64,000 nt of DNA from Adineta vaga (taxonomy: Eukaryota > Animalia > Rotifera). The notes beneath the pieces were generated by a model that worked only from the letters and a program-made list of their open reading frames with translations, made no database searches and was not told the origin of the DNA. Positions 4,173 to 60,010 of the stretch are shown here, piece by piece; the stretch's first letter is position 1, and each line of letters opens with the position of its first letter. Where the stretch lies: NCBI GenBank assembly GCA_021613535.1, contig CP075493.1:186001-250000 (forward strand). Direction: 5' to 3'. The translations under genes and the position numbers were made by a program.

Positions 4173-4748
4173 GGATAATCGGATGGAATACGAGACACAA
4201 GTTTTGAAAGATCCAGAAACCGATGCTGCTCTTTCCAGTAATCAAAGCTGGCTGATCTGTCGAACTGACGCTCATACATAATGTAATCCAAATAGGTCAC
4301 AGCGTCGGATTTAGTAGGTAAATCGCCACTTTTGTATGCTTCGGCTAAGTCCTTCAGAAAGTATTGCTGAGACGTACCGTCAATAGCCTCGTGTCGTACC
4401 GTGATGATAATGATATCGTCAACTTGCAGAATATCACTAGTGTCATCATCTTGTTGCACTTTGTTGCTATGTTTCGTATGACGACGAACAATGTGGAGAC
4501 GAACGCGTCTCATCCCCTCCATGGTGAAAAGATTTGGTGCTCTTTCTTGAAGAATAAGATCGTTGAGTACATCGGCATGACTGCCATACGGAATTTCACT
4601 TTCAACGAACGTAAATCCTTCGTCGGTTAACTCTTCAATCTGTTGATACCATTCATTTGTAGTCGGATCCATGTGAAACGATGTACGTAAAACTGTTTGT
4701 TTTGCTATCAGTTGCTGCATGGCCCGGCGCAAACGTTTTATTGAAACA
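4173..4748 (-). CDS. NRPS exon 7 (N-lobe of condensation domain)
   Basis: SIKRLRRAMQQLIAKQTVLRTSF, TVRHEAIDGTS, TYLDY, DYWKEQ, IPSDYP. Acceptor GTCAG|T and donor CC|GTACGT. Confidence 0.88.
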
Positions 4749-7700
4749 CTGACACAAAAACAGACAAAAATTATCCTATATTCACAAGATCTCATGCTTA
4801 TCGGATAATGAAACGTAATGAATTATCTAAGAAACAATAGCGTAAGTGCGACACGTTCGTGCCTCTTTCACGAGAAAGTTTTCTATTAGAGCAAGTGTCT
4901 TAGTATTTTTATGGGTGGATTTCATACTTGAAAGTCGACCTCCTGCAGATCTAGCTGAGAAAGTTGTGTTAAATATTTTAATTCTTTCGACTTACCAGCC
5001 ATGACTAATCGCGTATGTGAATGGCATATTGGCGAATTCCCATGTGACCGATGAGTCAGAGTCATGGTCAGAGATAGAAGCTGCTTGCGGTACTGACAGA
5101 GGACCTAAAAAGTTAAATCAAGTACTATAATGCGAACGATGTTGCTGGTCAATTCAGATTAATCTTTAATAATACGAATCCGTGATAACAGGACCAATTT
5201 TTCTATTTTGTACTCTTTTTATTCAATGATAAAAACTGCCGGACAGTATCTCGAAGACATAGAAATGCTAAAATACGTAGCAAGAGAGTACGCATGTATC
5301 GGTCACCGAACATAGTCTTCGACCAAAACTAAAATGTTTGACTTGACATTTCCATCTTAATCAGCGTCTTCAAAAATCTCTGAATCCAAATTTTTAGCGT
5401 TTTCAGTACGGAGAGTGAAACGTTAGGATATCCAGTTTACTAAGTACTCTTCAGTGTCTCCGAGAAAAAAAGACAAAACTGTCTTTTAAAAATTGAGTTC
5501 TTTAGTTTGCAGGTAGAATTAGCATTTTTTTGTTATATACCAAAATATAGACCATTAAAAACTGAACAAAATGCAATATTAATATATTATATTTCACATA
5601 CTGTCCAGTGCCAATCGCTTTTGGCCATGTAAATGGTAGTTTTTGGAAGTTTATCGCTTGTCATCGATTCACTTTGATAGATCTCAGGCTTATTTTCACA
5701 TATGTTGCACAACTTGTTGTTCTCTACAAAATAGTTAAAAAAAGCTACCTCTCGGCATAAAAATTGACGTATACTATGGACCAGTCGATAAATTCGAATC
5801 TGGAAGAGGAAGAGGATGTTTCTTCGTACACTTTCATGGAAATGTTTGCCTGCTAAGAACTGGAGTTCAACCCTATATACAATGAGTATAGAGGATCATT
5901 CGATAATAAAGAAAGGTTTTCGAGTAATTTCATCCCTGAGGGAAGTACAGAGATTCCAAAATAAATTTCGACATAGCAGCCTAATTGTTATCAGAGTTGA
6001 GGGGCCTTTAGGTTGTGATTGTAAAAATATAATATGAATTCAAGAGTTATCAAAACCATATGGAACACTGAGAACATTTCGGTACACGCGTATGGAGCTA
6101 TATGAGAGCCGCAGCAAACGTTTCAAATAACTCCTGAATTCATATTATATTTTTACAATCACAACCTAAAGGCCCCTCAACTCTGATAACAATTAGGCTG
6201 CTATGTCGAAATTTATTTTGGAATCTCTGTACTTCCCTCAGGGATGAAATTACTCGAAAACCTTTCTTTATTATCGAATGATCCTCTATACTCATTGTAT
6301 ATAGGGTTGAACTCCAGTTCTTAGCAGGCAAACATTTCCATGAAAGTGTACGAAGAAACATCCTCTTCCTCTTCCAGATTCGAATTTATCGACTGGTCCA
6401 TAGTATACGTCAATTTTTATGCCGAGAGGTAGCTTTTTTTAACTATTTTGTAGAGAACAACAAGTTGTGCAACATATGTGAAAATAAGCCTGAGATCTAT
6501 CAAAGTGAATCGATGACAAGCGATAAACTTCCAAAAACTACCATTTACATGGCCAAAAGCGATTGGCACTGGACAGTATGTGAAATATAATATACTAGCG
6601 GAGATACCCGCTGCAAAAACGACACAATTTACGTTTTTTATCTACAGCAGTGCTTTTCTTATCACCCACAGGACCTCCTTGTTCGTATTTATCCGTCGTG
6701 TATCAGAAAATCCTCACACCCTCCTTTTCCGCCCTGACTTAGTTAGTGTAATCTTTCAGGTCGTCACTCAGCGTATGTTACCTGTCTTCCACACGTGTTT
6801 GTCCTCCGTACTGAGATCCTTCCTATATCCCTTTTCGCGTCATGCACCAGGTCTTTTTTCAGAACTTCGCATCTCTTCATTAGTTCTTTCCTACAGATTT
6901 TGTCTGGCTTTGTATACGATATACAGCTCTGTTCCTTTTAAATCCACTCCTACTGTCCCGCTGCAACCCCAGTCCCATTCTACACCCCGTCTCGACCTTC
7001 CTCTAGATTGAGGGAAGCATTGTGGAAAGTTTGGTGACGTTAGCTATTACAGGGAACGTACGCATAACGAACAAACTTTCTTCTTTATATATATATAGAA
7101 GATTATATAGATAGATAGATACATATCGATTAAAGAACCTTTAGTTGTCACATTTATTGCAAGAAATAAATAGTATTAAATAAAAAAACCTCAAAACTGG
7201 AGCACATTCTGTAAGTTTCTACCAAAATAACGACAATTGAAATTCAATACGACTTGGGTGAAATTTCACCCAGACACCGATTCCCATCCTCAAATCAATT
7301 TATTTTGAAACGGAACATGTAAATTATCGTAGATGTGCGGTCAGACGGTCTACGGCCGCCTTCGCTATCAATTATTTAAAGTTTTTGAGATGCTGCAATC
7401 CTATTGGTCAGTTTCATAGATTGCCTGTAGGAAGCGTAGAATTCATTTTTTCGGAACAAAGTAAATGTCGACCTTCCCGTGGGCCTAGAGAAGCATTGTG
7501 GAAAGTTTGGGAATGTTAGCTATGATTGAACTGCCTGGGTGAAATTTCACCCACGCTCCCCACCCTCACCCCCCAATGACCATTCCAACCCCATGTCGAC
7601 CTTTCCTGGGACCTAAGGAAGCATCGTAGAAAGTTTGGTGATCGTGGCTATTACAGCGACTGAATGCATAGCGAACAGACAGACAGACAGACAGACAACC

Positions 7701-10700: not shown

Positions 10701-13700
10701 ATTGTAATCATGTACTTTATGTTTAAAAAAAAGCAAAATTCTATACGATTAATTTTGCCATTGCAAAAAAACTGATCGTGCAAAGTCTTGCTTTTCTTGA
10801 AAACAAAAAGCTTACATTATAAATAAGCTTTTCTTTGCAAAATTGTAGAACTTTTGACGCCTTCTCTTATGATAAATTTTATTTTCTTCTCATATAGAAG
10901 GAAGATGAAACGCAAGAGTGGCTCATTCTTTATGCGCCAGTCATTATTTTTGAACTAGAAAAAATAAAATTCCTAGAATGTTAGCTTATATATCTCCCTT
11001 ATAACGGGAGATAGAGACATGCAACTTTGGAGTCATATTTGCCTACTTACAAGGGCGAAGATACCTAAGTTTGAGCATGTTTGAGTTTACTATAAGGAAG
11101 AACGAGCAGTTTTTCTAACAACGACTAAGACTTTTGGTTCACCCTTTATTTGATCATATCTTGAAAAATCATGTACACTAAGTGATTTTGTCTGGAAACC
11201 GGCAAGAGATATAACTAATTGTTGAGCTAAATTCAACCTGGAGTTCAGAAAATATTGATATAACTGAAGCAACAAACTCTTCAATTTACTAAATTATTCA
11301 GCAACATCAAAAAAAAATCTTTTTATGATAAAGATTAGATACAGGCTGTTGATTTGAAGTCTACATTCCACAGGGTTTAAGTTGGTATAATATCTGTTTT
11401 TAACTGTTTCATGGTGCAAGAGAACCAAGTTTCTATGAAATGGTTCTTATAGGGATCATGTTGGGCTAGACTGAATGCTGCCAAGCGGGTCCACAAATTG
11501 TGGATAGTGGATCGGTCATTAGTATAATGATTAGCTGCGAATAAGAATAAGCAACTGTTCAAATAAAGAATCCTGGACAATTCAGCATCTTACCAGCAGA
11601 ATGTAGTGAAGTTTTGTATGGCATCAAAACACCTATGAACTGCTACAGAAACCCAAAGACAACAAGGTGACAACGCGAATATGGGCTACCAGAAAGAAAG
11701 TTCCCTCGAACTAAGTTCCATAAGCCTTAACCAGAATAGGTGAGGCTCGTTAACCTTCATTGGCAGTTCATGACATGGAGTAAACCATTTCAGTTAAAGG
11801 GAAGGCAGGGGAAACTCCCGCTGTATATTCTCAAGCACAATATGATTAACATCAAGATTTCCAATCAAGACAACAGCATGAATGGAGTTCTCAGAGAGAA
11901 TATCTCGCTCGGTAGAGATGGTCATGTACGACAGGTGACCTTCGATCGTCAACAGGCTACTGTCCGAACCAAGAACTCACTCAAAATTGGAACCTGGAAT
12001 GTAAGAACTATGTTTCAAAAAGGAACATTGGAGAACTTAAAGAAAGAAATGCAAAGACTGGAGGTCAATGTGTTAGGCCTATGTGTAGTCAGATGGCTGG
12101 GGCTGGATCTTTCATAACGGATAATTTTACTTTATTCTACATTGGAGGAGATCAGCACGAGAGAGGAGTAGGTATATACCTCTCCCCAGATTAAAAGACC
12201 CCTGGTCTTCTAATATGACCCCGCAAAGTTTTGAAATTTTTGGTCTTTTTTGCTGGGAAAAACACAAAATTACTAGGAAAAATATGTCGAAAGGGGTCTT
12301 CTAATATGGGAGGGTCTTTTAATATGGGGAGGGGTTTAGCTCTTGACAAAGAAATCTTCAGGTGTTTGAAAGGCTTCCATACGGTTTCAGACAGAGTTCT
12401 TCTTGTAAAACTCTACGGCAAACCTTTTAACATCTCATTAATTCAATGTTACGCACCGACGGCTAATTATGATGATGATGGCATCACGAGTTTTTATGAA
12501 TATCTAGACAAAGCCTGCAAACAGTGCAACTCAGATGACATCATCTACGTAATGGGCGACTTCAATGAAAAAGTGGGAGATAAAAAAATTGGCAATACAG
12601 TAGGACCTTTTGGTTTAGGAAACGAAAATGATAGAGGAGATAATCTGATAACCTGGTGCCAATGACATAATCTCGTCATCACAAATACATGATTCAAAAT
12701 TCATCCCCGTAGGCTATAGACATGGCGAAGCCCAGGAGGTCGGGTCAGAAATCAAATCGATTATATTATGGTCCATCATCGATACAGGAATTCAATTCTC
12801 TCTTATAAAACATTTGCTGAAGCGGACTGTGGTAGCGATCGTGTCCCAGTTGTCAGTGAAGTTTGAGTAAAATTAAAAAGAATAAAGCAGCCACAGAAAA
12901 ACAAAAAGCTTCAAGTTCACATTCTGAAAACTGATTCAGACTTGAAAGAAAAATTCAGTATCAAAGTACAGAATCGTTTTGAAGCACTAGATGAAGTTAC
13001 AAAGACTGAAGTATAGTGGGAACAGATGAAATCATCCATATTAGCATCTGCTGAAGAAATAATTCCTAAAGCTCAAATAAACAAAAAGAGAAGATGGATG
13101 ACTGACGACATTCTACAACTAATGGAACAAAGATGACTCAAGAAGGCAAACCTACATGAATACAAGTTGTTAGACAAAGAAATCAAAAAGAAATGGTCAG
13201 TACCAAACGAGAAATAGCTGAACGAACAACGTTCAGAAATTGAAAAAAGGTTGAGTGTAAACACTAAATTCGCTCATGAAAAGATCAATGAAATCACGGA
13301 GAAAGCAAGATGTACCAATTAAAGCTGTATTAAATCGAAAAAGGTGACATTCTGGATAGATGGTCAGAATATATAGAAGAACTCTTCGATGATAATAGAG
13401 CTTTTAAACCTAACATAAAGAAAAACATGGAAGGACCATCAATAATGAAAGACGAGGTGAGACAAACTATGAAGTCAATGAAAGCAAACAAAGTAACAGG
13501 TCCTGATGGAATATCCGTCGAAACGATTGAATGTCTCAACGAACTAGGTGTTGATGTCATGACAAAACTTATAAACAAAATATATGACACAGGTGAAATT
13601 CTAGAAGATCTAACTAAATCTATATTCGTAGCTCTTCCTAAAAAGCCAGAAGCTACCGAATGTGAACTCCATCGCACAATCAGTCTCATGAGTCATATGA

Positions 13701-16700
13701 CAAAGATTCTACTTAAGATTCTGATGATGCGCATGAACAATAAAATCAGACCAGAAATAGCAAAAGAACAACATGGTTTCATGGCTGATAAGGGCACTAG
13801 GAATGCAATTTTCATTCTTCGAATGGTAATCGAAAGATCCATAGAAGTCAAATATGACATATATCTCTGCTTTCTCGACAACACAAAACCGCTTGACAAA
13901 GTTAAACATGACAACTTATTCGAAACTCTTGAAAAAATGGATATCGATGGCAAAGATCTCCGATTAATACGTAATCTTAATTGGGATCAAAAAGCTACCA
14001 TAAGGGTAAACATTAAGAGAGGTGTCAGAAAAGGTTGTATTCTATCTCCAGATCTCTTCAACATCTACAGTGAAATGATACTTAGAAATCTAGAAGATGT
14101 AGAAGGAATAAAAATTGGAGGTAATAATTGTAACAATATAAGATATTCAGACGACACTGTATTAATAGCCAGTAATGAACAAGATCTACAGAAAATGATT
14201 GATAGTCTCAAAAGAAAGTATATAGATGGGACTATCACTCAATACCAAGAAAAAAGAATGTGTGAGTATTTCAAAGAATAAAATTCTACCAACATGCAAC
14301 GTAAATATCAATGAAGAACCAATCAAACAAGTTGTTCGCTTCAATTATCTAAGATCTGTCATAACATCAGATGGACGATGTGATGACGATATCAAAAAGA
14401 GAATTGCTCTCTAAACAAGCATTCCAAAAGATGAGTCCAATTCTAAAAAATAGATCCACATCGATCAACACTGAAACTAGAGTTCTTAAATGTAACGTGT
14501 GGTCGGTTCTCTTATATGGATCTGGAAGTTGGGCAATCAGCAAAGAAATGGGGAAACGCTTAGAGGCTACTGAACTGTAGTTCCTAAGAAGGATGCTGAG
14601 TGTACCTCGGACGACAAGAGAAAGCAATGAATAAATATAAAATAGAACGAAATGGAAAAGATGTTTACCGAATAGCATCCGTTATAGGCAACTGAGATTC
14701 CTTCGGCATATAATCCGTAAAGGTTGCTTGTAACATCTGGTATTAGGCGGGAAAATCAACGGAAAGAAATACAAAGGCTGACCAAGAATCAAATACCTCG
14801 AAAAAATGAACATCTGAATTGAAAAATAAGGTTACGAAAAAACAGACTTGCTTCACGCAGCGCAGGACCGAAAAAATTGGCGTATCATATTACCCAATGT
14901 CTGCAACATATAAGGATCATACTACCAGGAAGGGTTAATTTACTATTTATGAAGTTTCGGCATCTTACTGACATACAAGCATCAGTATTTTTACTTTCGA
15001 TCAAAGTAAAAATTATCAGCTTATGAACGAGCTCATAACAAGGAAAAATAAACAATCGCTTTGATTTATTTCGTCAAACTATTGTATAAATATCAGTTTT
15101 ATAGGCGGTTTGCTAGTACAGTATCTTATTGTATCATCTACAGTACTTCTCCCTAATAACGACACTAAAATGAAAAGTTCTTCTGTTTTTATCCACGTTC
15201 ATCTATTTTACGACAGATTTCAAACAACTTTATATTTGGGGAATCTTTGCATGACGCTCTTTCGAATGATATATTTTCGCGGAGATATCACCGGTCTACG
15301 ATCATGATGTCTTGCTGTCGTTATCACGTGCTACTTCCATAATAACGACACCCAACTATTTTTTCACCCTAATAACGACACTCAAGCAAAATTTATGCTA
15401 AAAAAGAATCTTTTTCAGGAAAAAGTGTTTTTGACTGGTTTTACTCAGAAATCGATGGCAAGTTCCTTAGTCAACTTTGAAGATCGTCTTAAGTTCTACT
15501 TATATTTAGCAGTTCAGGTCGATTAAATCATGTCATAAGAGAATTCCAATATCAACAAAAATCATCTTGGATTGATGGAAAAAATAGACATTCTTAATAG
15601 CAACACCTAGCAAAATTTTTAACCCTAATAACGACAGTAAGCTGGTTTTGATCGTTCTAGTAATTCTAGCTAATTTTTCCTCTAATAGCGACCCTCAGCC
15701 AATTTTTGACCATAATAACAACGTCCAGCTATTTTTTTACTTCAATAACGACAATAAGCCGATTTTTCATCATCATATTGATTCTTGTTATAGTTGCTGA
15801 AGAATCTATCAACCTTTATTAGGGATGTGTCGTTATTAAGGACAAAAATTAGGTGGACGCCGTTATCAGAACGAAAAATCAGCTTACTGTCGTAATTAGG
15901 GTCAAAAATTAGCTGAGGGTCGCTATTAAGGATGTCTATTTTTTCCATCAATCCAAGATGATTTTTGTTGATATTGGAATTCTCTTATGACATGATTTAA
16001 TCGACCTGAACTGCTAGATATAAGTAGAACTTAAGACGATCTTCAAAGTTGACTAAGGAACTTGCCATCGATTTCTGAGTAAAACCAGTCAAAAACACTT
16101 TTTCCTGAAAAAGATTCTTTTTTAGCATAAATTTTGCTTGCGTGTCGTTGATAGGGAGAAGTACGGTACTAGTTGTGATGTAAAGATATCAATCAAATGT
16201 TTACTTTTAAAAACTACTTTGCACGAAAGATTGAAAGCTAATAAACCAGTAACTTACCGCGAGTGCATCCTGTCGCGACCAGTGGCCTACTGTTTGAATT
16301 TCTTGTTTCGTATCGGTCTCCTAGAAGAAAGAAGCGATAATATTTATTAGGTGAATGATGATCAAACAAAGTCTCTCGCTCTCTTACGAGTTGGTTTTCT
16401 ATAAGGAAAGTTTCTGGTGATCCATTTTCTTCTCTTCAGAAGAGATTGTGAATAATCTCGTTCAAATAAGAAAATAGTTCATGGTAAAGAAATACAGTTA
16501 TGGAAACAAATTCTCGCATAACAAATATGGTTTTGCTGGAAAACGTCGACAAGAGTAATGTCGAAAGAGAGGAATCTGGAGAAAGAAAACGCAATACCGA
16601 AAATATCGAAAAAGAAAAACGGGAAAAGTACAACATCAGAAATAAAAACGTCTTAAAAGAAAAGGACCGAAAATGAAAATGTCGAAATGATCAATGTATT

Positions 16701-41400: not shown

Positions 41401-43109
41401 GAGAATTTCAAGGGCTATTTATACCATAATTTAGATCCGAGATAAAATTTGTCTTACAGAAAATATTTCAAAAACAAAAGCTTTCCTATAATTATAGGAT
41501 AACATATATGTGCGTGACAGAATCATCAAAAAATGGCTTTGACCTTTGAATGTCGTTCGCAGAAGTGAAAAACTTGCTACAGCAAAGTGGTACCTCATAT
41601 GACGACCTATGTATTTAAAAAAGAAACCGTGAAAATGTGTTCCTAGTTTTTAGAGTAGTAAAAACCGTCGTGATAAAATCATATTTTTGTGATGGAATCA
41701 TGTTTGAAAAATAATGACGTTTACATCTTTTGTTCCCTGTAAAAATTTTAAGATAATGCCTTCCAATGCACAATGTGTTGTCATGTGATTAAATCAGCTA
41801 GGAAAAATTTCAGATTACGACTTCGTTGAAAAAACAAGTCTTTATTCTGAAAGCATCATAATATTTTATAAATAATCACTGCATCATGATTCTTCACTAG
41901 CTCTTCAATCGCTATGGAATCTGAACTATCTATATGGATAATATATATTTTTAATGCAATATGAATATCTCGATAAATTTGGGGCTGTTAGTTCACTCCA
42001 TTTGAGATATTGTTTTTTTTATAGAATTTATTCCGGATAATGCAGTGGTCTCCATGTGAAACAACAGAATACTTAGTTATAAGGGTGTGAGGCTGTGGTA
42101 TGTCCCATTTACCCACAAGCCCTCACCCACACTTACCCACAACCTGAAGGGTTTCGTAGATTTTGAAAACCATTTGTCTTGATTTGTCGCCGCATTCTGA
42201 AGCTTTTGAAATCTACGAAACACTTTTGATGGGTTTGGTCACATTACCTCTTTTTTTAGAGTACGATGTGTGCACTGTTGGATTGCTTTTTATCTACATA
42301 TGTCGTGAGAAAATACTGCATTCCATTCCATTTTCAAAATACTTATTTTTGAAGAAAACTACATCGACATTTCTTCGAGGTTTTTTTATAAATTAATCTC
42401 TGTCGTTTATAAGAGAATCGTAAGTCTGTTTCAAGATTTAGTCTTTTGTTTTGATCTGTGCTATCTAAAAGAACACTTGGTTCGCAAAAATTCACAAAAT
42501 TTCTCCACATTGAATTGAATAGGTTACTATGGAGACGAAGCAAAAACACGTGAGACCATCGATATCAATGGTTGGCTGCACACAGGTGATGTCGGCGAAT
42601 GGACATCGTCAGGAACCCTACGAATTATCGATCGATGTAAGAACATATTCAAATTGAGCAATGGCAAGTATGTAGCACCTGAACCGCTTGAACGTGTCTA
42701 CCTTCGATCTCCTTGGATAACTCAAATTTTTGTCGATGGTGATTCAGCTCAGTCAACCGTAGTTGCCATCGTCGTCCCAGATGAAGCCTACGTTGTCGGA
42801 CACTTTCATTCATCTACCACAAATAAATCCGGATCATTATTCGCATCACTCTGTCAAGATCCTCACTTGAAACAAATTATTCATATTGAACTCATTAATT
42901 TAGCCAAACATTATAATTTACATCCTTGTGAAATTGTTAGCAACATCTATCTTAGCCATGAACCATTCACACAAGCCAACGGTCTATTGACATCAACCAT
43001 GAAAATCCGTCGAACAGTCGGTCGACAACGTTTTCATGAGTTGATTAAACAACTTTATACGACGGCGGAGAGTGCCATTGTCAGCCATACAATTTTGTCG
43101 AAAATCTAA
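35449..43109 (+). CDS. Long-chain-fatty-acid--CoA ligase (ACSL-like), 3 exons, about 698 aa
   Basis: Exons 35449-36238, 39452-40171 and 42523-43109; both introns are phase-1 GT-AG. Motifs TSGTTG|DSK, SFLPMTHCFE, SGSAP, GYAQTE, VFKG|YY, GWLHTGDVG, IIDRCKNIFKLSNGKYVAPE, NGLLTSTMKIRR. The start ATG is uncertain. Confidence 0.92.
36247..36765. mobile_element. Foldback MITE, about 205-bp arms, 8 nt inside ACSL intron 1
   Basis: 36247-36453 is the reverse complement of about 36560-36765. Confidence 0.85.
37057..38556. mobile_element. Non-autonomous CACTG-terminated (EnSpm/CMC-like) element
   Basis: TA|CGCTGTAAAAAATAA ... TTATTTTTTACAGTG|TA; AACCCTT-type subterminal motifs. Confidence 0.65.
40820..41505. 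mobile_element. Tc1-like foldback with about 300-bp near-identical arms
   Basis: Left end TA|CAGGGT; about 40832-41125 is the reverse complement of about 41203-41495. Confidence 0.85.
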
Positions 43110-44067: not shown

Positions 44068-44364
44068 TTAAAACACTCCTTTGCAGTGATATTACCCAAT
44101 TACAATTTATCATTGATTTGTCACTGATCAAGCTACCCACCATGGATGAGGGTAGGTGTGTGTAAATGCAAGAGATCGTCACCCACACGCACACCCACAC
44201 CCATCCTCGAGAGAAGAGTAAGCATTCACTGTGATACAGGGAGTGCTTCGCTGCATGTTTGTATCGCAGAAATAAATTTTCAAATAAGCATGTCAACACA
44301 GAAGAATTTATTACGCAAATCGAGTCGAGACTTCTAGTATGACCAACATATTGTTTATGCTTAG

Positions 44365-44911
44365 ATCGTAGTACTATTGTCATTGCTCATCGTTTGAGTA
44401 CGATTCAAAATGCCAATCATATCTATGTGTTAGACAATGGAAGAATTATTGAAGAAGGTAAACATGAAACTTTGATAGCCAAACATAGGAAATATGGAAC
44501 AATGATAAAAGTTCAGTAAATGACAAGAATGATTGATAAAGGTCGAGATGATCTAATGCGTATGGTAATAACTACAGCTGAAGATCAAAAACAAATATGT
44601 ATATAAAAGTTTAAATAAAAATTATTCAGATTTAGTTCAATACTTTATCTATTGTCTAGCACAACAAACCCACGCATTGATAGAAGGGGAACTTCTCACT
44701 ACAGATCAAATAAATATTGATGCACTAATATTAGAACTAAGAGTTTCTTTTGCAGAAGGATACGCCATCAGCCGAACAAAACAATATATTTCGAAGACTC
44801 TTAGCAATGAATAAATCCGAATGGGTTACTATCTTAGTTGGTTGTTCAGAATGTGGGTTGAGTGGTTTGACCCAGCCAGTATCTGCAATATTATTGACTA
44901 AAATCGTCAAT
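44365..44911 (+). pseudogene. ABCB1/P-glycoprotein-like fragment (end of NBD1, linker, start of TMD2)
   Basis: [37 protein letters not shown] followed by an in-frame TAA at about 44517; short intron; FRRLLAMNKSEWVTILVGC. No other exons found. Confidence 0.8.
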
Positions 44912-45050
44912 GTAAACATCTCATCGAGTTCTATGAAACTGTTCAACAATTAAAACTATGTTATTTTGTATGTGTAGGCATTGAGGGTGTGGGTAAAGTT
45001 ATCTCTTATTCATCCACACTCACACCCAAACGCTCACCCACACTTACATC

Positions 45051-48000
45051 TAGAGCCCGGCGGTTCCCTGAAAAATGGAACCGAGAGCCGAACCGTAACC
45101 GTTATATTTTAAGTTTTAATAACCGAGACCGGAACCGGAACCGTTAGAACCGAAAAACTAAATAACGACAACTGGTACCATCTTGTGTTTTATTATCTGC
45201 GAATAATCTTTTCGGAAAGTGATTCGTCGATCGATTTATCATCTCATACTATTGAAGAACGATGATATAGATACAGACCAACCTATCTTCTCTTTTCGTT
45301 TTTTGTCGATACGTAGTTGATATTTCATCATCTTTTGCATTGTCTGACTTTTATTATCTTTTGTATTGCATGATTTTTCTCTTTTTAATGGATCATATTC
45401 TTGTTCGGGTTTGCATTTGTTGATCTTTACTTCAATGAAGTATATATAATATTGATTTTATTTGATAAATTACTTATTATTTTTACATGTGTATGAATTT
45501 GCTTCGATTTAAATACAAATGGATGATTTATTAACAAAACAACAAATTATCGAATTGATTAAGAATCAAGATGGTCGTTTAACATTTATAAAACCAAATA
45601 ACACATCATCCTCTAAAGTTTGGTCAAACTTTAGTTATGTTTATATTGATAATCGACAACAAAATTTTGTGTGCTGCCAAATATGTAAAGAAGTTTTGCA
45701 TCACAAATCAATCAACGGTACTAGTAGTATGATCAAACACAAAAACATGTGTGAACAAGTTAAGAAAACTGTGAATCATAATTCTACTAGTACTCAACAA
45801 TATTTTCGACCTAAAGCAACTCAAACTGTTTCGAAAAAAGTGAAGGAAAAAGTCACTATTGCTGCCGTTGAATTTGTTTCATTGGATAATCGAGCGTTTG
45901 AACTACTAGCTGGTGATGGATTTGTTCATTTGGTACAAACAATATTTGAAGCTGGTCAAGATTCATATTGATCACATAATGTTAATGTTCTGAAATTATT
46001 ACCTGACTCAAGAACTGTAAGTAAACTTTTTTCTATAGAAGATTCTTATTTTGCTTTTAACTCTTGCTAGATAAGTCGGAATGTTGACAGATTATATATA
46101 TACAGGAAATCACAATTGGTGAAGTTGTGTAAAGAGATGAAATCTTATACGATTATCGTTGACTTTTGGACTGATACTTATACAGGTAAAGTATAGGTTT
46201 TCAATCCTATTGTGTACATATTTTTAAGAAAAAAAATGATTTGATACACAGAAATATGAAATTTTACCAAGGATATATCTTTTTAGGTATTCATTATGGT
46301 GAAATTGGTCTTTCACATTTGAACAATGATTTAAAATTACTAGTTTTTATTTTGGGTTGTTTTCTATACGACCGCGAGAACCAAACTGCAAATCAAATTC
46401 GAAATTTTGTTAATGCAAAACCAATGGATTTTCATTTCTCATTAGATGATAATAAATCTATTGTCTCAGATAATGAGAACAAAATGAAAGCAGCTTTCAA
46501 AGATGGATGTACACGAATTGGATGTTCAATTCATTATGTTAATAAACAATTGGAACACTGTTTTACTTCGGAAATAATTGATAAAGTTCCAGTAAAATGT
46601 GAAATTATTCAAGACATGTTTTCTCATATAAGAAAAATTGTATCCCATGTTCGACACGCACATAAACAATCAAAATTATCTCGTAAACTTCAATCGTATT
46701 CTGAAACTCAATTTAATGGAGCATTCTATACAATGAACGTTTTTCTTATAGTATTTGATGAATTAATTGGTATTTTAGATCGTAATTATTTGAACAATTA
46801 CGAATCAATTGATAAAGATTTACTTTCATACGTTTGTAAATTTTTGGAATCATTTGACGAAGCAATTACGGATTTTAGTTCAGATACAACACCAACAATA
46901 TACAAAGTGTTACCTTTTAAACAAGAATTAATAAACAACTGCAAAACTCATCCAGATGATCATGATGGTATTCAACAAATGAAAATTTTTCTAGGTAATG
47001 TATCAATCTGAAAATCTTTTATGTTTCTTGAATATAACATAGACATAAAAATATCTAAAAAATAGTAGATAAGAAAAACACTCATCTTGTATTCATTACA
47101 CAATAAATCATATCTCATAAGATCGTATATAATGAAGTAGAGATTTGTTGGTTGCATATACAATAATTTTGTTTTAAACGAACGTCTTTCTTTCTTTTTA
47201 GGAAAACGTCTTCAAGAGATTTGGATATTAAATGATGTTCATTATATTACTACACTTCTTCATCCTTCTTTCAAAAATTTTGATGTAAATCCTGATCTTC
47301 GTGAGCAAGCTATCAGTTTAGTAAAAAAAGAAATATTAAAACGTCAATCATCAATATCAAATATCAATAGTACATTGATTGTAGATACACCTGCTGATGT
47401 ATCTAAAGTTGATCATTCATTGCCAACTGCTAAAAGTCTTTTATCAAAATGTTTTGATTTACCAAAAACAAATCCAAAACTTGCATCTACACCATATAAT
47501 GAATTAGAAGAATATATTGCATTGAATTTTCATTTAAAAGAAAATGACGATATTTTATTATTTTGGTTACAAAACAAAATGAAATTCCTTGTGTTGTTGT
47601 CTATTGTACAAGATTATTATGCGATACCAGCATCAAATACGTTGGAAGAACGTTTATTTTCTTCATCAAAACGAACGATTAACGATAGGCGCACCAGTCT
47701 TGGTGCAGAAAAAATAAACAAACTTTTATTCTTGCAAAAGAATTTAAAATTACTAGAACAACTTCATACAGAATCAAATAAAGAATCTAGTACAACAAAA
47801 ATCAAACGTAATATGAGTGAAGAATCATTTAATACAACTTCAAATGTTGATCAAGAACAATTATTGGCCATGGCAACCAGCAAAAAGTTTAAGTTAATTG
47901 AAGAAGATTCGATTCTACTTTGCGATAGTGGTAAAGAAAATGATGACAATGATTTGTTTTAAAATTTATTTATTTGTGGTGTCATGCTTCGTTGCATTGA

Positions 48001-48517: not shown

Positions 48518-51500
48518 TTATTTTGGTGGTAATATTTGGTCAGAGTAGCGTTTGGAACGAAGCCAGTCAATCGTTGGTTTTAATGACTTAAAGAGACATC
48601 CATTTTCATCCATGATAAGAGCTTTCGTCACACTACTGATATGCTCGTCCAAAGCATATTCACCATCATCCCAGATATATGGACGATCGTCAGTCATTGG
48701 CACATTGATTGTAGATTTAATCGCTTCATAAACTGGCCGTGTCTTCTCAGACAGTAATGAACGGACATCGTACCCACCATTTTCCTGTATTAAGCTGGCA
48801 CGTAAATCCAAGGCTTGTATGCAAACTAGGAAACATATACTTATATGTTGGCTTAGTACGGATATAGATTTTCGAGCAAGGCATGCAGATATATGACCCA
48901 TCGAATTAATATTTTGATTATATTGTTCAGCATGAGTTGCGAATTTATCAGCTATAGGTGCGCCCAGAAATAGTAAGTATGGCATAATGGAATTGCCGGT
49001 TAGCTGAAGGGCTTTTACTCCGATATTAACTTGTCGAGCACGATTACCAACGAGACAGCCAGGTAAACCGTTGCTAAATTCAGGAGTAACCATTTGAGCA
49101 ATCTGTACATCTAAATGTTTAGCCATAAGACCTACAGCATACCGAAGTCTATCCATCGATACAGCAACATATTCACCGAGAAAATTACCGCCACCTATAT
49201 GTGATAAAAAGAGGCTATGAGATGAATTTCAATCCATATATGGCTCTAGAGAAATTTCGAGGACCCCTCTGGTATAGCACCTGAGGATTTAAGGTTCCCT
49301 TCAATACATAGTGAAACACTCCATTATGTTTTTCTACTAAGATTGTTTTCAGAGAGGGTCTACGAAAAGATGGACCTACACAGAAAACACAAAAGGTGTT
49401 CTACGAAGTCATTTTTGCAACGAAATAGAAACCCTTTTAAACATTTCGTACGAACATAACATGCTTCTATTGAACTTGTTAACAGTTCAGTAAGCTTTTT
49501 TGACGGTTTAGAATTCGTTGCAAACTGCGAAGCCCTCTAAAGTTTGCATTTGATCTAAAAAACGTTTCGAAAACGTCTTTATTTTCTACGAAACCTTTTT
49601 TTAGTACACGAAACCCTCTTTGGTTTCGATTAACACCTTTTTTGTTTTCAGTCTATTTACACATTAGCTTGCATACAAAACATTTTGGATTTTTGATTGA
49701 TATAGCTCATTCGATAGAGCTTGAAAAGTTATTCTTAGAACCAAATTTTTAGCATTTTCTGACACTCCCTTCAAGATATATGAGAGATAATCTTTACGCC
49801 ATACTCAAGTCCTACTTTGTGCAATTAGGAGATTTTCGACACTTCGAATGTGCACTTAATAAGTTCATAAAACAATATTAAAGACCATTTTGCAATGATT
49901 TCTCGCTAAAAAAATGTGTTTTTTTTCGGAGGAAAAATTTACGTGTTTTTGCGATGAAAGTCTATCAAGATAGTTCCTGCTTAAAAATCTTTTTAAATCA
50001 AAAGATAGGCCGTGAAAAACTGCATCTTTTTTTATATGAAAAAATAAGATAAAACGTCGGGAGAATTATAAAGTTTTCATTACAAAGAGAGCCATTATCA
50101 TGCATTGTTATTATAGGCTTATGATCTCGTTGATTTATGTGACATTTTTCATAGCACAGATGAATACTAACATATATACAATTTCAAATGTGTTTTTAAT
50201 GCTGAAACAACTGTATATCATCTCGGTTGAGAATGCTTCATTTCTAGTCCTAATTAGCTGTAACCACCTTCAACTTTATGCACATACATAAGGTTTCTAT
50301 GCACAACTCATCAATGCTAACTTACTCCTAACTTCTCTCATTTCTCAAAGTGATGTGCGTACTAGCATATAGAAATGATTCATATGATACATCAAGATGG
50401 ATCTTTCAGTCGTGTATGCAGCGTTTTCTCAGTTACGGAAATGAACACTCTGAGTGAATCTAGCAAAGTCGTGCCAAGTATACATCAAAGTTTTCTGAAT
50501 CAAAACGTCATATCTATTTTGGACTACAGATTCATAGAAAGAGTTTCGTTATTACCCGTATGAACTTTTCTGTGTGAACTGACTACTTCCTGCGGATATT
50601 TTAATTCGTTTCGAATAATTTCACATGTCAGGCAAGCAAAAATTGTATAGAGCGTTACAGAGCAAAGGATTTGTGTAATTCATAGTCATTAACAATTGGT
50701 TGTATATCATCGAAAGTCTGCTTCTAACTGACTCTAGGGCTCTCGCTATGCAGAAGTATGCTAAAAACTTCGAAATCTTAGTGTGTGTTGAATCGACCGT
50801 CTTGGTTATTACATCTAATGAACACTCTCTCCAGAAAAGCTCCTTCAGAATCAGTGGATGCTAATATTTATGATTGATTTTTAGGTAGTTTCTAGATGTT
50901 TTCGAAAAGGTTTCGAAGCCTGGTACTTTAAAGATTATCTTGTTTCCATTCAAATATAGGCAACCACGATCGTCTAGTGATGTGAATGAGGATTAATAAC
51001 ACTCTGTTTGCGTCTTTTTACAGATAAGCTCTCTGACCATTTTATCTGTAACAATTATCGATGATTTTTCAAAGGTTATCACCATCTCTTCCAATGTGGG
51101 CGATCAAACAATGTCGCTATTCGAAGTGGATCATCGTCAGTTACATATAAGTTCTCGTATCTTTGTATTCCAGGCAGCATCTGCCGAAGAGAAACGAACA
51201 GTGGGGAGGTACGAAAAAAAGCATAGTCGAATCAAGAGCGAGAAAACTTAGATAGTATAAGAGGAAAATGTCAAACCACGAATAATAGTCAGAATCATGA
51301 AAAACTTCATAAGATTTTCTCTCTGTTCTTATGCAAGTAGATAGTTCACAAGTCTCTAAAAATCAGCCTTGTTTGTGAGATTTATTCTGAACCTATATTA
51401 TTAATATAGCTGCATTTCTAGTATGCTGTGTTGTTTCGTAAATGTAAAGTTAGGCATGCACCGAATCGGCGAACTGTGATGCTCAGTGCATACTTATTTC

Positions 51501-54500: not shown

Positions 54501-57500
54501 CATTATAATTGTATGATACACTAGAAAAACAAATTGTAGGATAATTAACGGATAAAGTGTTTTACGAGTTTATAAAATATAATATACCCTTTTCCGAGCT
54601 TATTTGACAAAGGTATAAACTATTTTTCATTTATGAGACACTTCAAAAACGGAAAAAGGGTTTATTAAACGTTGTAAATTCATTTCTTGCACAAAAACTT
54701 AATACAACGCATGTTTCTAGTAGGAAACATAACACATTGAGATTTCTACGAATAATCAGGTAACGACTGGAGAGACGTTAAAAGATTGTTAATATCATCT
54801 TGGGAAAAGTGTACTCGTTTTCGATTATAATTAAAGTACTATGCTCGAACAATAAAAGGGCCGATATATGATACTTACAATAAACTCTGCCAGCATCAAC
54901 ATCAATTAATGGATTGTCGTTGGCAGAATTCATTTCAATTTCAAGTATACGCGCAATATCATGCAGTGTTTCAACCATTGGGCCAAGAAATTGTGGACAG
55001 CAACGCATTGAATATCGATCTTGAATTAATGCGTCTACGCTTCGCTTTGTTAATTTACCATCCAGAGCATCATAAATCAACTTTGAACCATCAATTAAGT
55101 CGAGTAAAGCGGTTGCTATGTCAATCTGTAATAGTAGTAAATACATAACAAAATACAGTAAAACCTTTCTATAGTGGACACTCTCGGGACAATTCAAAGT
55201 GTCCAGTGTAAAGAGGTGTCTATTATATAGAGGTGAGGTATTTTATAGAACAGCTCTTTCAGACACATAGTAAATATGTTTTGTAAATACCTAAGGGTTC
55301 CTAGTGAACACTACAAGATACTACTGTGTATTGTTAGTTGTTCTTACATGCATATTTGCTCTCGATAACTTCATAGTTGTCAAAAATCTAGTCGAATTTC
55401 TCTTATGAGCACCAATACACTTTTCAAAAATCTTCATCGTATATAATTATATTCAAATATCCACTATAGGGAGGTCCATTTGCTGCAAAAACTAACATCT
55501 GGTACTTTCAAAACTGTCCACTATACAGGAGTGTCCACTATGAGAGGTTCTACTGTATATTAATAGGCCTTCCGCGCACTTCAACAAAGTTTATGAACGC
55601 GAGCAGATAAACTCTTACGAGGGAACCTTTCCAACTGGCCAATCGCTTTTTAAATAAAAGTCACTGGGATAGAGGTTATCGACCATACTGATTTCGAATA
55701 TTTGTACGAGAATTCTCTTAAGCCTTCTGTCCGAACTTATATGTATTTTGCCGAAAATTTAGTCTGGGACATGGTATATATTGAAAATCGAAAGACGATA
55801 TTTTGAGCTGACATTTTGCCCAGAGATAGGGCTATATACAAATAGGAAGCCCTGAAATTTTCAGCTCAAAAGAATGTTTCTTTCTCACGCTATTGCACTT
55901 CAAAAAAAACGCTTGTATATTCTTTAAGCAATGGTAGACACTTTGAAGTTTTGACAGTGCAATAGCTTGAGAAAGAAACATTCTTTTGAGCTGAAAATTT
56001 CAGGGCTTCCTATTTGTATATAGCCCTATCTCTGGGCAAAATGTCAGCTCAAAATATCGTCTTTCGATTTTCAATATATACCATGTCCCAGACTAAATTT
56101 TCGGCAAAATACATATAAGTTCGGACAGAAGGCTTAAGAGAATTCTCGTACAAATATTCGAAATCAGTATGGTCGATAACCTCTATCCCAGTGACTTTTA
56201 TTTAAAAAGCGATTGGACAGTTGGAAAGGTTCCCTCGTTAGTCACATGTTTGAAGTTCAAATTCTCTGGTGTTTGATATTTTCAGTCTATATTATTTTTT
56301 TTTCAAATCTTTTTAAGATCCTATTCAAAATCTTTTACTTAAAAAGACGAATTTATATAGAATATTTCAAAAAACAGAACCGTTAATTTAATAAATTGCT
56401 ATTATGAGAAATGAATTACCACTCACAGTTTTTTGCCACGGATCATTGCCCGCGTGAAAGACCTAAGGTTGGGGAATAGGAAAGTGTAAATAAGTATTTC
56501 GAAATTTTTCATATATTGGGATGGAATGATGGAAAAGGTAAGATTATACATCCATATGACTACTTTCACAATCCCTGCTCCAGGCAGCATTCATCGACCT
56601 AACCCCTCCGCCCGCGCAACTAAAGACCTCAGGCCTTCTATAGTAGAGTACTTGACGAGCTTACTGATACTAAGAAAGATTTTCTTTCAACTGTTTTCAT
56701 TTGTACAAAAGAATGAAAAATATAAACGTAACGCTGAGTCATTTTCATAACGTTGTGACACAGTTTTTGGTTAATAATTTTCAGATCCTTAAGATATTTA
56801 GCATAATATGATATTCTGAAGTGTTAGCCTTCTCGGTATTTGTAAAATTTCTATCCAAGAATGGGATCGATATATTCACGTGAAAACCTGTACTATGAGC
56901 AGCATGTCACGAAATTTACAGAAGTCCAGGAAGTGCCTTTGACCACAAAAACTAAAACCAAATAGTTCATTTTGTGGAGAATGAAATTCTGCATCGAGTG
57001 GTATGTCAAGCAACATGTTTTGGAGATTTCATCTCATAAAAACATCCAAAATACGATTTTCGAAAAGTTTTAGAATCTAATTTCTTAAATAAAGAATTCA
57101 CTTTTCCAAAAAAATAAATGTCAAATTTGTGATCAATATTAAAAACTGTAGCTAGAATGATGTTTAGGAATGTTGTTATCGACATACAAAGTTTCAAAAC
57201 TTCATCAGCGAAGTATCACTTTACGTGGATATACCGTCTACAGAAATTAAATGGGTTTCACGGGAAGTGGGGGAGGTAGCTATTCATTTGGATACACCAC
57301 AAGAAAATTTTCGAGGGCTTTGATAAAGAAACCTTTTCTTTTACGTGTAATCATACCCTCAAAAACAAGGAATAAATCGACGCTAACAACTTTCAAAAAA
57401 ATTATGGTTGAAACACGACTATCCACGCCAACGAAAGTGACGCGAAACTCTAATTAAGTTGGCGAATATGAGAAGCACTCAAATTGTTCAAGAGATGAAT

Positions 57501-60010
57501 ATATTTCAAATATGTTCCTTCCTCAACTAAAGTTAAAATCAGAACCAATCAAAATACATTAATTTAAAGACAAAATTCGAGGTACTAGATATAATCAATA
57601 TGTTACGTTCTTACTCGTACACACGAAATTCTATTTAATCTCACGTTTTGGCAAGATTTAAGACAGCATGACGAAATAAACAGCTAAAAATTGTTCAGAC
57701 TCAAAGCGCGTGGTATCAGAGTACGAAAGCACAATCCATGGTAGTTTATGACTAAATACGAGAATGTATTCTACATTTTTAGACTATCACAGGAGAGATA
57801 GTAGACAAGATAATAGTTTCAATTGCTAATCATATAACGGCAAGTTTCGCGGAACCGTACAACTTAAAATTGTACTTGCGCAGTCTTCATCTGGAAGTTG
57901 CGCACTCTCATTCATAATTAAACGTAAACAGGCTTATCCAACCATCATTTGTTCTTAATATAACATAATAGCTCATGCAATTATTCTCTACGGTGTTCAG
58001 TGTGATTTGAATTCTGATTCTAAGATATATGTTGTTTAATTGGACAAACAAGGTTTCATTTACAAATCTGACGAATTCTTACAATTTGTTCAATAAAAAT
58101 GATTAACACGTTCAACACAATGGGACCCACCGGTGAGTCCCACTATATTGTACAGTGGTTTGTCGACTATGAAAACAAAAAGATTTTCGGAGACTTTTAT
58201 TGTTTATCAGACTTTATAAAGCTCTTTTGCCGATAATTTTAATAAAAAAATTTAAATCTGATAAATAAATGGCGATGCTACAGTGGAAATATGAAAATCT
58301 TTTTTTTATTAAAATGATCGGCAAAGAGAGCTCTACAAAGTCTAAAAGACGAAAAATTCCCGAAGAACCCATTTTTGCTCTTTCGGGTCGACTGCCCATG
58401 AAAATACTCAGTCGTATGTCTGAAAAGTTTGGAACTTTTGATAATTCTTGAGCTCATACTGTGAAAAAAAAGGTTCTGTAGAAGAACAAAAGCTTCTATT
58501 TGAGTCAAAAGTTCCCAAAAAACGAACATCAAATTAGACAAAACCTTTTCTGGTTCTGAATTTTACCAGCTGGTCGAGCCCTCTTATACAGAACCTTTTC
58601 TTAAGTTTCGGAGAGCAAAAAAGGGTTTCGTAGGAGAATACTAAAAGCTTCGAGGGTTCAGATTTAATTCTACAGAACCATAATGGTTTATTTCGAAATC
58701 CTGATGGTTCCGTACTAAACCCTGACAGTTCAGATACTTTACTACAAAGCCCTTTTTTGCTCTGCGGAACTTACGAAAAGGTTCTGTAGAAGAAAGTTCG
58801 GCCCGCTGGTAAAATTCAGAACCATAAAAGGTTCTGTCTAATTTGATGTTTGTTTCTTTGGAACTTTTGACTCAAATAGAAGCTTTTGATCTTCTACAGA
58901 ACCTTTTTTGTGGGTTCGGGAAAGCTCATTTATTTTTTTCAGAGTAGTTGTTCCATGAATTGGTAGTTATACTCCTGAATCCCGTTTTCAACGAGGTTTC
59001 GTCTGACATAAAATTCAATGTTGATATCATTTGTATTTGGAGGTGTACTCTCTAGAGAAATATTATTTGCTACCTTGTAGAATCAAATCGTGCTGAACGT
59101 GTTAATGCACAGATATATTTATTATGCCTTAAAGTTAAAAATTACTATATTCTTTGCTTTTATTTACCTGTCCTGAGTGGCCTTTGATCCTGTGTAAAAA
59201 TGGGTGAAATGGCTGGTTACTGGAACCTAATGCTTGAAGAACCATCGCATGAATGTGAAGAATAGCAGCCATCAACGTATATAGATCATAGCATGCAAGT
59301 GAAGCAGAAGCCGTCATCATACTAGTGCCGTTTAGCAGAGCCAAACCTTCTTTTGGATTAAACCGTTTTGTTTCGTATCCAAGTCTGTGTAGTGCTTCAG
59401 GTGCGTTAATCGTTTCACCACGAAAATCGACATAGAGTGTTTCATCTTGTCCAGCAATAGCAGAGGCAATATATGACAGCGGAACAAGATCACCCGATGC
59501 TCCTATTGACCCAAATTCAGGAACTAACGGTGTAACTCCTTCACATACAAATCGTATTAGTCGTTCGTCCCACAGTCGACGAATGCCAGAAGCTCCAATT
59601 AGATGAGCATTGGCGCGTAAAACCATGGCTGCTCGGATAGACTCTAACGACATATTGGCACCACTGCCCGTCTTGTGAGCACGAACTAAGTTGTTTTGTA
59701 GTTCTTCAGCATATTCTCCGCAGACGAGTCGATTGGCAAGGCCGCCGAATAAACTTGTGACTCCATACAGAGGCTGCGAAGCAGTGACGATATCGTGAAT
59801 GATGCTAACTGATTGTTCCATTCGATGACATATATTCACATCATTTGATAATTCAACCTCGTGATAATGACGAGCAATCAGAACTAAATTTTCCAATGTG
59901 AGATTTTTGCCATTAATTACGATTGATTTCGATTTTTCTTCTTCATCATTTTTGCATACCATTATAGCATTAGTGTACCCATTGTGTACAGAAGAATCTG
60001 TATTATTCAT
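48518..60010 (-). CDS. MIO-dependent aromatic amino-acid ammonia-lyase/aminomutase (cyanobacterial PAL-like), 3 exons, about 588 aa
   Basis: Exons 60010-59168, 55125-54879 and 49194-48518 (phases 0 and 1). MIO motif GSIGASGDLVPLSY; LYGVT; PKEGLALLNGT; QDRYSMRC; NSANDNPLID; GGNFLGEY; SNGLP; THAEQYNQNINS. Confidence 0.94.
49839..53430. mobile_element. 3.6-kb non-coding element with about 600-bp terminal inverted repeats in lyase intron 2
   Basis: 49839-50445 is the reverse complement of about 52826-53430; no recognisable ORF in the interior; no clear TSD. Confidence 0.85.
55156..55555. mobile_element. pogo/Tigger-type MITE
   Basis: TA|CAGTAAAACCTTTCTATAGTGGACAC ... GTGTCCACTATGAGAGGTTCTACTG|TA. 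Confidence 0.8.
55617..56238. mobile_element. Mariner-type foldback MITE, about 285-bp arms
   Basis: ACGAGGGAACCTTTCC ... GGAAAGGTTCCCTCGT. Confidence 0.88.
58107..59101. mobile_element. piggyBac-type MITE with a nested foldback (about 58457-58946)
   Basis: TTAA|CACGTTCAACAC ... GTGCTGAACGTG|TTAA. Confidence 0.8.

Follow-up and report, generated by a model that had tools for sequence, protein, structure and literature searches.

The stretch analysed here, hereafter the window, is a 64,000-nucleotide piece of the genome of the bdelloid rotifer Adineta vaga (assembly Av20, GCA_021613535.1; Chrom_1 = CP075493.1, abbreviated C1, 186-250 kb; window position 1 = C1:186,001), in a subtelomeric setting near one end of chromosome 1. 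It carries three intact, intron-bearing enzyme genes, seen by Pfam and as long open reading frames (ORFs): a one-module nonribosomal peptide synthetase (NRPS), an acyl-CoA ligase, and a 4-methylideneimidazole-5-one (MIO) ammonia-lyase. These genes are real and their frames intact; the NRPS is expressed as spliced RNA, and the region is best explained as a piece of the horizontally acquired, transposon-rich subtelomere of this chromosome. The best single explanation of the gene set, which we put forward tentatively, is a two-enzyme link in which the NRPS would load the product of the lyase; a chance neighbourhood is nearly as likely. The original prediction, made from the letters of the window, had proposed a secondary-metabolite cluster of all three enzymes with an efflux pump; the intact genes, an NRPS adenylation (A) domain without its usual aspartate, and a lyase-NRPS pairing in the related Adineta steineri speak for it, whereas the ligase is of a generic type, the ABCB pump gene is dead, and the linkage is paralogous.

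Pfam matched pieces of the NRPS on the minus strand (Condensation, 4142-4795; PP-binding, 22579-22872; AMP-binding, 27.3-31.4 kb), a second AMP-binding gene in three pieces on the plus strand (35.4-43.1 kb), and Lyase_aromatic, also in three pieces, on the minus strand (48.5-60.0 kb). The remaining Pfam-matched long ORFs of the window were transposon-derived (LINE reverse transcriptase (RT), mariner, and hAT), and the rest of the long ORFs scanned there gave no Pfam match. Similarity searches were run exon by exon, the A. vaga assembly searched being six contigs of 100.8 Mb, and frame continuity was checked by reading the junctions: for the NRPS, ligase and lyase all junctions were canonical GT..AG, the phases matched, and the coding sequence (CDS) was divisible by three. 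Pfam and the junction reading together confirmed what had been read from the letters, namely an NRPS, an acyl-CoA synthetase and a lyase with open spliced frames, plus an efflux-pump fragment, among transposable elements.

The NRPS gene has 8 exons on the minus strand over 35.6 kb (Table 1), and its CDS of 3,462 nt encodes 1,153 aa arranged as a single module of adenylation, carrier (T) and condensation (C) domains, A-T-C. RNA contigs from sequencing runs of three studies were aligned to window:26800-32400 (5,601 letters, the A region of the NRPS). Contigs of 3,617-3,678 nt joined 31409-31041, 30393-29819, 29761-29488 and 27811-27281, and the skipped parts are bounded by CT..AC on the plus strand, as GT..AG introns of a minus-strand gene would be. 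They continue 1,925 nt past exon 4; their loose end could be placed at 22,833-22,862, where it encodes ATTPEDEQL, the first residues of the T exon. Since the genome has a single 100% copy of exon 2, the contigs represent spliced RNA and not a retrocopy; an untranscribed NRPS, which would have spoken against the proposed cluster, is thus contradicted by contigs from three studies. The reads show exons 1-4 running into T, and the joins beyond the T exon (exons 5-8) we infer solely from their phases and from length: with about 195 nt of untranslated region, the 8-exon model adds up to the 3,676-nt RNA contig, and all phases fit.

Pfam matched each domain of the predicted A-T-C architecture, but of the C domain only the part coding for the N-lobe is in the window; the exon of the C-lobe is beyond its edge (C1:181,756-182,524), and position 4173, which had been taken as the gene end, is an exon end from which the gene continues beyond the window. 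The C-lobe exon is 63% identical over 230 aa to the orthologous exon of another bdelloid (contig L021) and corresponds to Condensation positions 233-335; tblastn with paralogous NRPS ORFs did not find a C-lobe below 4178 or in C1:166-186 kb. The N-lobe scored 37 bits and has RHEAIDG against the HHxxxDG consensus, the second His being kept and the first replaced by Arg, and this motif was present in 8 of 9 aligned sequences, the window's own included; the C-lobe exon alone scored 22.6 bits, under the cut-off.

The adenylation core motifs are present, i.e., TSGSTGKFK (A3), NHYGSAE (A5), RTGDL (A7), GREDFRVKIFG (A8) and GKIDRK (A10, with its Lys), and the carrier domain keeps the GGxS serine (LGGSS; PF00550, 4e-12). 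TIGR01733 on P0121 gave 194 bits, under the 317-bit cut-off. The best PDB matches of the A domain were LgrA and ApnA A1, and the protein falls among NRPSs of bdelloids and bacteria. In the A4 motif (FDxS) it is Asp235 that binds the alpha-amino group of the substrate. The window protein reads SFQWTLH against SFDIH in canonical bdelloid A domains, with W-T in place of F-D, and the Rotaria orthologue likewise lacks Asp235 (SIKWALH, W-A); the earlier reading of this site was right that Asp is absent, but the residue that aligns with Asp235 of the canonical bdelloid A domains is Thr and not Gln. An A domain without the Asp that binds the alpha-amino group is as expected for a non-amino-acid or unusual substrate. 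Twelve 'SWxxH' A domains, including the window NRPS type, formed one group in a maximum-likelihood tree (support 90/88), and in the proteins of known domain order (P0142; the A. steineri NRPS) such a domain comes first; judged from its sequence, the window A domain belongs to this bdelloid clade of "loading" A domains.

The lyase gene, on the minus strand, has 3 exons and a CDS of 1,767 nt (588 aa) with junction phases 0/0 and 1/2. Its exons cover positions 1-247, 240-317 and 331-464 of PF00221, and the MIO Ala-Ser-Gly triad is intact (GSIGASGD, 59489-59503). The best solved relatives were the phenylalanine ammonia-lyases (PALs) of Nostoc punctiforme (2NYF; 231 bits, 1.6e-67) and Anabaena variabilis (2NYN; 221 bits, 2e-64); histidine ammonia-lyase (HAL) gave 124 bits, and HAL and plant PAL reached about half the bits of the cyanobacterial PALs. 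The window lyase is identical to the latter in the GSIGASGDLVPLSY MIO segment and similar in size (588 vs ~565 aa), but where they have WFLK it has RAHK. The substrate-selectivity switch is Phe-Leu in PAL, His-Leu in tyrosine ammonia-lyase (TAL), and Ser-His in HAL. Here the pair is Ala-His (LVRAHKTG) and the Phe-Leu of a strict PAL is lacking, so that of the predicted PAL-type lyase the cyanobacterial relationship and the intact triad stand but the PAL switch does not. Other bdelloid lyase copies have A-H, V-H, S-H, F-H, A-L, S-L, N-L or T-L. The closest bacterial relatives (Nostoc, Waterburya, Chloroflexi), uncharacterised and 46-48% identical, have Tyr-His (WYHK), and the donor clade was therefore probably not canonical PAL. 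Orthologues with introns at the same places are found in A. steineri (80%, 582 aa), Didymodactylos (56%) and metagenomic rotifers, and A. vaga has two further copies of the cyanobacterial type, at C1:52-56 kb (55-67% by exon) and C1:467-475 kb (85-90% by exon, dS ~0.6).

We examined if the linkage of lyase and NRPS is conserved. In the window the lyase lies 17 kb upstream of the NRPS on the same strand, with the ligase, the ABCB remnant and transposons in between. In A. steineri about 215 bp separate the lyase from a multimodular NRPS of up to 4,928 aa downstream of it on the same strand, and this pairing was present on three contigs of one assembly (L026:1-23777, L029:1-21251, L017:1-17692) and on one contig of a second assembly. 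Asp235 is likewise missing from the first A domain of that NRPS (SWIPH / SWILH), and this domain falls in the same clade as the window A domain. The A. steineri lyase is wedged inside a packed NRPS cluster, with C- and A-containing genes upstream and intergenic gaps of ~200-550 bp. Both this position and the shared Asp-less clade argue against neighbours brought together by chance.

If the two enzymes are linked, the lyase would remove ammonia from an aromatic or imidazole amino acid to give an aryl-acrylic acid, or would give a beta-amino acid if it is a mutase; the A domain, without the Asp that holds an alpha-amino group, would adenylate this acid and load it onto the T domain; and at the terminal C domain a free amine or alcohol would accept the acyl group, with release of a small acyl-amide or ester. 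Substrates, hand-over from lyase to NRPS, and product are what we infer. The ligase, which is of the long-chain acyl-CoA synthetase (ACSL) type, and the dead ABCB remnant are probably bystanders.

Several results weigh against this link. With an identity of only 27-40%, the partner NRPS of A. steineri is a paralogue of the window NRPS; in A. vaga it is best matched (55%) at C6:1.14 Mb, on a chromosome without a lyase match; the pairing is therefore recurrent but not orthologous, and an A. steineri A-T-C gene considered as the orthologue of the window NRPS was rejected at the same 27-40% identity. Thus the expectation that relatives would share the synteny held insofar as the A. steineri lyase is next to an Asp-less loading NRPS, but that NRPS is paralogous, and the other contigs of relatives carrying orthologues are short or show other neighbours: compact ones have the lyase without an NRPS (L024, L025), and in L021 the 3' end of the NRPS is beside an ABCB gene, without a lyase. 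No homologue of the window NRPS or ACSL was found beside the lyase copies at C1:52-56 kb and 467-475 kb in the flanks fetched, where the sole adenylating gene seen, some 10 kb from the C1:52 kb copy, encodes a distantly related acyl-CoA ligase. A rough estimate of the chance that 2 of 3 lyase copies lie within 20 kb of an adenylating gene gave p ~0.2, which is not improbable. The C-domain motif itself varies, the A. ricciae orthologue having RNEVFDG instead of RHEAIDG. Finally, other enzymes accompany the lyase. Phenolic-acid decarboxylases (PA_decarbox) are found at C1:276,844 and 432,721, each within ~35 kb of a lyase copy, and 2-oxoglutarate (2OG)-Fe(II) dioxygenases, 62% identical paralogues (C1:284,790-285,688 = L010:4790-5688; C1:483,587-484,283 = L006:8587-9283), lie on the 5' side of the window lyase and of the 467-475 kb copy, in the same order and orientation and 9 kb from the latter. 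The company of a 2OG dioxygenase and a phenolic-acid decarboxylase points to a partnership of the lyase other than with the NRPS.

These observations are what one would see if the genes were chance neighbours in a foreign-gene-rich, rearranging subtelomere, all of them functional but in separate processes, a reading that we consider close in likelihood to the lyase-to-NRPS link. The lyase would then act alone or with a decarboxylase or dioxygenase (and a FAD hydroxylase at the paralogous locus), for example from amino acid through aryl-acrylate to vinyl-phenol, the NRPS product would be unrelated, and the ACSL would activate fatty acids. A FAD aromatic hydroxylase (FAD_binding_3) does lie at C1:481.3-482.6 kb, 6.5 kb from the second lyase copy; the L021 orthologue of the NRPS is paired with an ABCB pump and not with a lyase; and the paralogues of the ACSL (47-52%) sit mid-chromosome. 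The genome is rich in NRPS domains, the C-domain exon of the window having 150 six-frame matches across it, and NRPS genes take up much of the first 500 kb of C1. Besides the A. steineri arrangement, distance speaks for the lyase-to-NRPS link: the decarboxylase and the dioxygenase are 31-39 kb from the window lyase, farther than the NRPS.

The three enzymes may form a small pathway, in which the A-T unit would load the lyase product, the C domain would join it to a partner supplied as acyl-CoA by the ligase, and the ABCB pump would once have exported the result; we consider this three-enzyme cluster improbable. It is favoured by the arrangement of NRPS and ligase, which are divergent and 4 kb apart, by the intact frame and correct phases of the ligase, and by the ABCB gene that abuts the NRPS in L021. 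The ligase, on the plus strand, has 3 exons and a CDS of 2,097 nt (698 aa), with both junctions in phase 1/2. Its motifs are the P-loop TSGTTG-DSK and GWLHTGD...IIDRCKNIFKLSNGKYVAPE, the latter being, we take it, the ACSL signature; with ACSL / FadD11 it shares the 698-aa size, the TSGTTG..K P-loop and GWLHTGD...IIDR.K..FKL..G.Y.APE. The best NCBIfam matches were long-chain-fatty-acid-CoA ligase, FadD11 and the A domain of carboxylic acid reductase (CAR), with no aryl-CoA ligase among them, and all were below family cut-offs because only exon pieces were scored; the best PDB matches were CAR, and an atlas search gave only generic AMP-binding clusters. The 47-52% paralogues have tiny introns at the same sites. 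The ligase thus reads, by these motifs and matches, as a generic long-chain acyl-CoA synthetase; the prediction of an intact acyl-CoA ligase gene stands, but its signature reads as ACSL type and not as that of a coumarate ligase, and nothing in the motifs, NCBIfam or PDB matches links it to aryl acids. Moreover, no copy of the ligase accompanies the other lyase copies or the A. steineri cluster, and the C domain is downstream of A-T, unlike the starter C domains that accept acyl-CoA.

The pump also argues against the three-enzyme cluster. Two fragments of 58 aa and 70 aa remain, far from a full open frame of two transmembrane (TMD) and nucleotide-binding (NBD) domain pairs, and Pfam did not match either, whereas it does match the L021 gene through which they were recognised; the efflux-pump fragment of the original prediction is therefore ABCB in identity but a dead remnant. 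In L021 the complete ABCB gene (L021:3521-9193, Logan SRR23617210) is convergent with the 3' end of the NRPS orthologue, and since the A. vaga fragments sit on the other side of the NRPS a rearrangement is implied.

That the locus is decaying, with a transposon-stretched NRPS and its neighbours turning into pseudogenes whose transcripts lack function, is very improbable: the ABCB gene is already dead, the locus is not among 40 curated clusters, and the NRPS introns (647, 57, 1,676, 4,418, 17,482 and 247 nt, and ~7.6 kb), those of 4.4, 7.6 and 17.5 kb being full of LINE, mariner and RT-like elements, contrast with only ~30-130 nt between successive open frames in A. vaga NRPS paralogues, but all frames are open, the canonical splice sites are used, the Rotaria orthologue has the same exons despite larger introns, and dN/dS of the NRPS is low. 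The dN/dS values were calculated by the method of Nei and Gojobori and are rough, many dS being saturated. They ranged overall from 0.05 to 0.36 against relatives: 0.05-0.24 for the lyase; 0.09-0.32 for the NRPS vs Rotaria, A. ricciae and another bdelloid (A exons vs Rotaria 0.17-0.32; C N-lobe 0.09-0.19; C-lobe 0.27); and 0.17-0.36 for the ligase vs its C4 paralogue. No value suggests neutral decay, and the genes are, at this rough level, under purifying selection.

The lyase-to-NRPS link has counterparts in bacteria, where MIO lyases or aminomutases feed NRPS or ligase loading: SgcC4/SgcC1 (C-1027), AdmH (andrimid), CmdF (chondramide) and EncP/EncH (enterocin). AdmH and tyrosine aminomutases were among the PDB matches of the window lyase. 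Shared with these pathways is an MIO enzyme that adjoins an adenylating enzyme with a pocket not made for ordinary alpha-amino acids; the window differs in its animal host, in genes with introns, and in the A-H switch in place of the F-L, H-L or S-H of characterised enzymes. In insect Ebony, a monomodular NRPS-like protein, the domain after A-T transfers the acyl group onto a free amine. The window NRPS is likewise one A-T unit plus a predicted transfer domain, but its third domain reads as a Condensation domain, PF00668 matching the N-lobe and, below its cut-off, the C-lobe. A broader proposal, which we consider unlikely though worth stating, is an animal-encoded lyase-primed nonribosomal pathway: an Ala-His MIO lyase would make an aryl- or imidazolyl-acrylic (or beta-amino) acid for a dedicated clade of Asp-less loading A domains, and Adineta would have kept the lyase beside such A domains in two NRPS contexts, multimodular in A. 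steineri and stand-alone A-T-C in A. vaga. If true, it would represent a family of acylated metabolites new for animals.

To our knowledge, none of the bdelloid synthetases has an identified product. For heterologous reconstitution, an A-T-C protein of one module and the lyase next to it would be far easier to handle than the clusters of 5,000-13,000 aa studied so far. The gene is also a case of a bacterial-type gene stretched by transposons to 35.6 kb, with a 17.5-kb intron, that on the 8-exon model is still correctly spliced. Foreign-origin NRPS and polyketide synthase (PKS) genes concentrated in bdelloid subtelomeres are well described (PMC11258130; PMC10531068, the 2023 survey of the van Straalen group); no other animals are known to carry as many foreign biosynthetic genes as bdelloids, and some of these genes respond to fungal attack (PMC11258130). 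The assumption of the original prediction that such clusters are rare in animals does not hold for bdelloids, with ~40 published clusters (PMC11258130); bdelloid NRPS clusters being already published, the locus is a further case, and a three-enzyme cluster is not established. It shares with the published ones the genome, the subtelomere, a bacterial-type synthetase, spliceosomal introns, and conservation across bdelloid genera, and differs in an NRPS that is monomodular A-T-C, is spread over 35.6 kb, and has an MIO lyase beside it (PMC11258130; PMC10531068). The 40 merged clusters do not include the window locus (region1.1 ends at 40,179 and region1.2 starts at 865,834; PMC11258130, Nowell et al. 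2024), although its domain pieces are present in the tBLASTn sheet of that study (Chrom_1 190,223-191,032; 208,621-208,833; 213,330-217,323), and 'ammonia-lyase' and 'phenylalanine' are absent from its main text. NCBI annotation has the A part of the NRPS only (I4U23_000033, 577 aa, which reads through into intron 4) and exon 1 only of the lyase (I4U23_000039). It had been anticipated that automatic inventories would miss the locus, and the published cluster lists and NCBI annotation do miss or fragment it; such inventories under-count genes of this kind.

Table 1. Coordinates of genes and elements of the locus (window positions unless marked C1).
Feature	Position	Strand	Remarks
NRPS exon 1	31041..31409	-	ATG at 31392; A domain N-terminus; Pfam AMP-binding; RNA contig pieces end at 31409, junction 31041; start of P0121 / I4U23_000033
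NRPS exon 2	29819..30393	-	A3 TSGSTGKFK; A4 region SFQWTLH without Asp; preceding intron 647 nt, GT..AG
NRPS exon 3	29488..29761	-	A5 NHYGSAE; preceding intron 57 nt
NRPS exon 4	27283..27811	-	A7 RTGDL, A8, A10 GKIDRK; preceding intron 1,676 nt; donor GTAAGT at 27282
NRPS exon 5	22587..22864	-	T domain, LGGSS; Pfam PP-binding 4e-12; loose end of RNA contigs enters this exon
NRPS exon 6 (predicted)	4996..5104	-	linker and C1-like PLSVPQ; AG/GTAAGT boundaries; phases fit exons 5 and 7
NRPS exon 7	4173..4748	-	C domain N-lobe, RHEAIDG; Pfam Condensation 2e-09; orthologues 60-67% identical; phase fits C-lobe exon
NRPS exon 8 (C-lobe)	C1:181,756-182,524 = L012:5756-6524	-	outside the window by 3.5-4.2 kb; found via orthologous exon of relative L021
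ACSL-type ligase exon 1	35449..36238	+	Pfam AMP-binding; donor after TSGTTG, phase 1
ACSL-type ligase exon 2	39452..40171	+	Pfam AMP-binding 2e-41; phases checked
ACSL-type ligase exon 3	42523..43109	+	GWLHTGD ... IIDRCKNIFKLSNGKYVAPE
ABCB transporter remnant	44343..44950	+	NBD1 end 44343-44516, TMD2 start 44741-44950; tblastn vs complete ABCB gene of relative L021, 53-57% identity
Lyase exon 1	59168..60010	-	ASG triad 59489-59503, switch pair A-H; Pfam 1e-72; PDB 2NYF 1.6e-67; I4U23_000039
Lyase exon 2	54879..55125	-	Pfam positions 240-317; phases checked
Lyase exon 3	48518..49194	-	to stop codon; Pfam positions 331-464; phases checked
LINE-like element (endonuclease + RT)	12219..14278	+	in 17.5-kb NRPS intron; Pfam RVT_1 5e-23, weak Exo_endo_phos_2
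Mariner-type transposase remnant	20942..22012	+	in 17.5-kb NRPS intron; Pfam Transposase_1, DDE_3
Mariner-type transposase	32485..33435	+	between NRPS and ligase; Pfam HTH_48, Transposase_1
hAT element	45513..47959	+	between ABCB remnant and lyase; Pfam zf-BED, Dimer_Tnp_hAT

Two further candidate exons of the NRPS were dropped: 4830-4991 ('FNTTFSARSAGG') has no donor or acceptor of compatible phase, exon 6 splicing straight to exon 7, and 7569-7742 is a (TGTC)n-containing repeat also found in A. ricciae. The Rotaria magnacalcarata orthologue (L018:1956-20214; L028:1241-25755) has the same exon boundaries and a first intron of 14-16 kb, and A. vaga is thus not alone in having very long introns in this gene; its T exon is 57% identical to window exon 5, nothing related was seen within 10 kb downstream of that exon, and another of its introns contains an RT-like element resembling window 26.1-26.4 kb. 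A DDE_3/Tc3-type transposase ORF lies just past the 3' end of the A. vaga NRPS (L012:3628-4146; C1:179.6-180.1 kb), and a separate RNA contig (2,978 nt, run X1) ends at window 32026-32299, just upstream of the NRPS start and beside a mariner copy, with a loose end that lies elsewhere.

The single bacterial lyase context seen was that of Nostoc, where a DAHP synthase adjoins the lyase; no NRPS was present within 10 kb on one side, the contig ending just past the lyase on the other. A search of bacterial genomes for related loci with non-conserved query peptides gave one irrelevant locus (Fluviispira, 32%). A 'histidine ammonia-lyase-like' A. vaga protein is already recorded in GenBank/UniRef (ACD54680.1 / B3G4D2). 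Three many-exon Lyase_aromatic genes on C3 (7,462,660-7,464,206; 18,252,054-18,254,072; 19,487,710-19,489,729) are distinct from the C1 copies and probably represent the native histidase of the animal. A HAL-like gene of A. vaga, FUN_014988, with its best match in Branchiostoma, has been described (PMC12220480), and this native HAL was the only relevant match of a full-text literature search with bdelloid and rotifer lyase terms. An uninterrupted 468-aa ORF (L001:448-1851; C1:40,448-41,851, minus strand) is situated past the end of published cluster 1.1 and before the first lyase copy; it scored 436 bits to the NCBIfam 'fatty acid CoA ligase family protein' (PRK12583).

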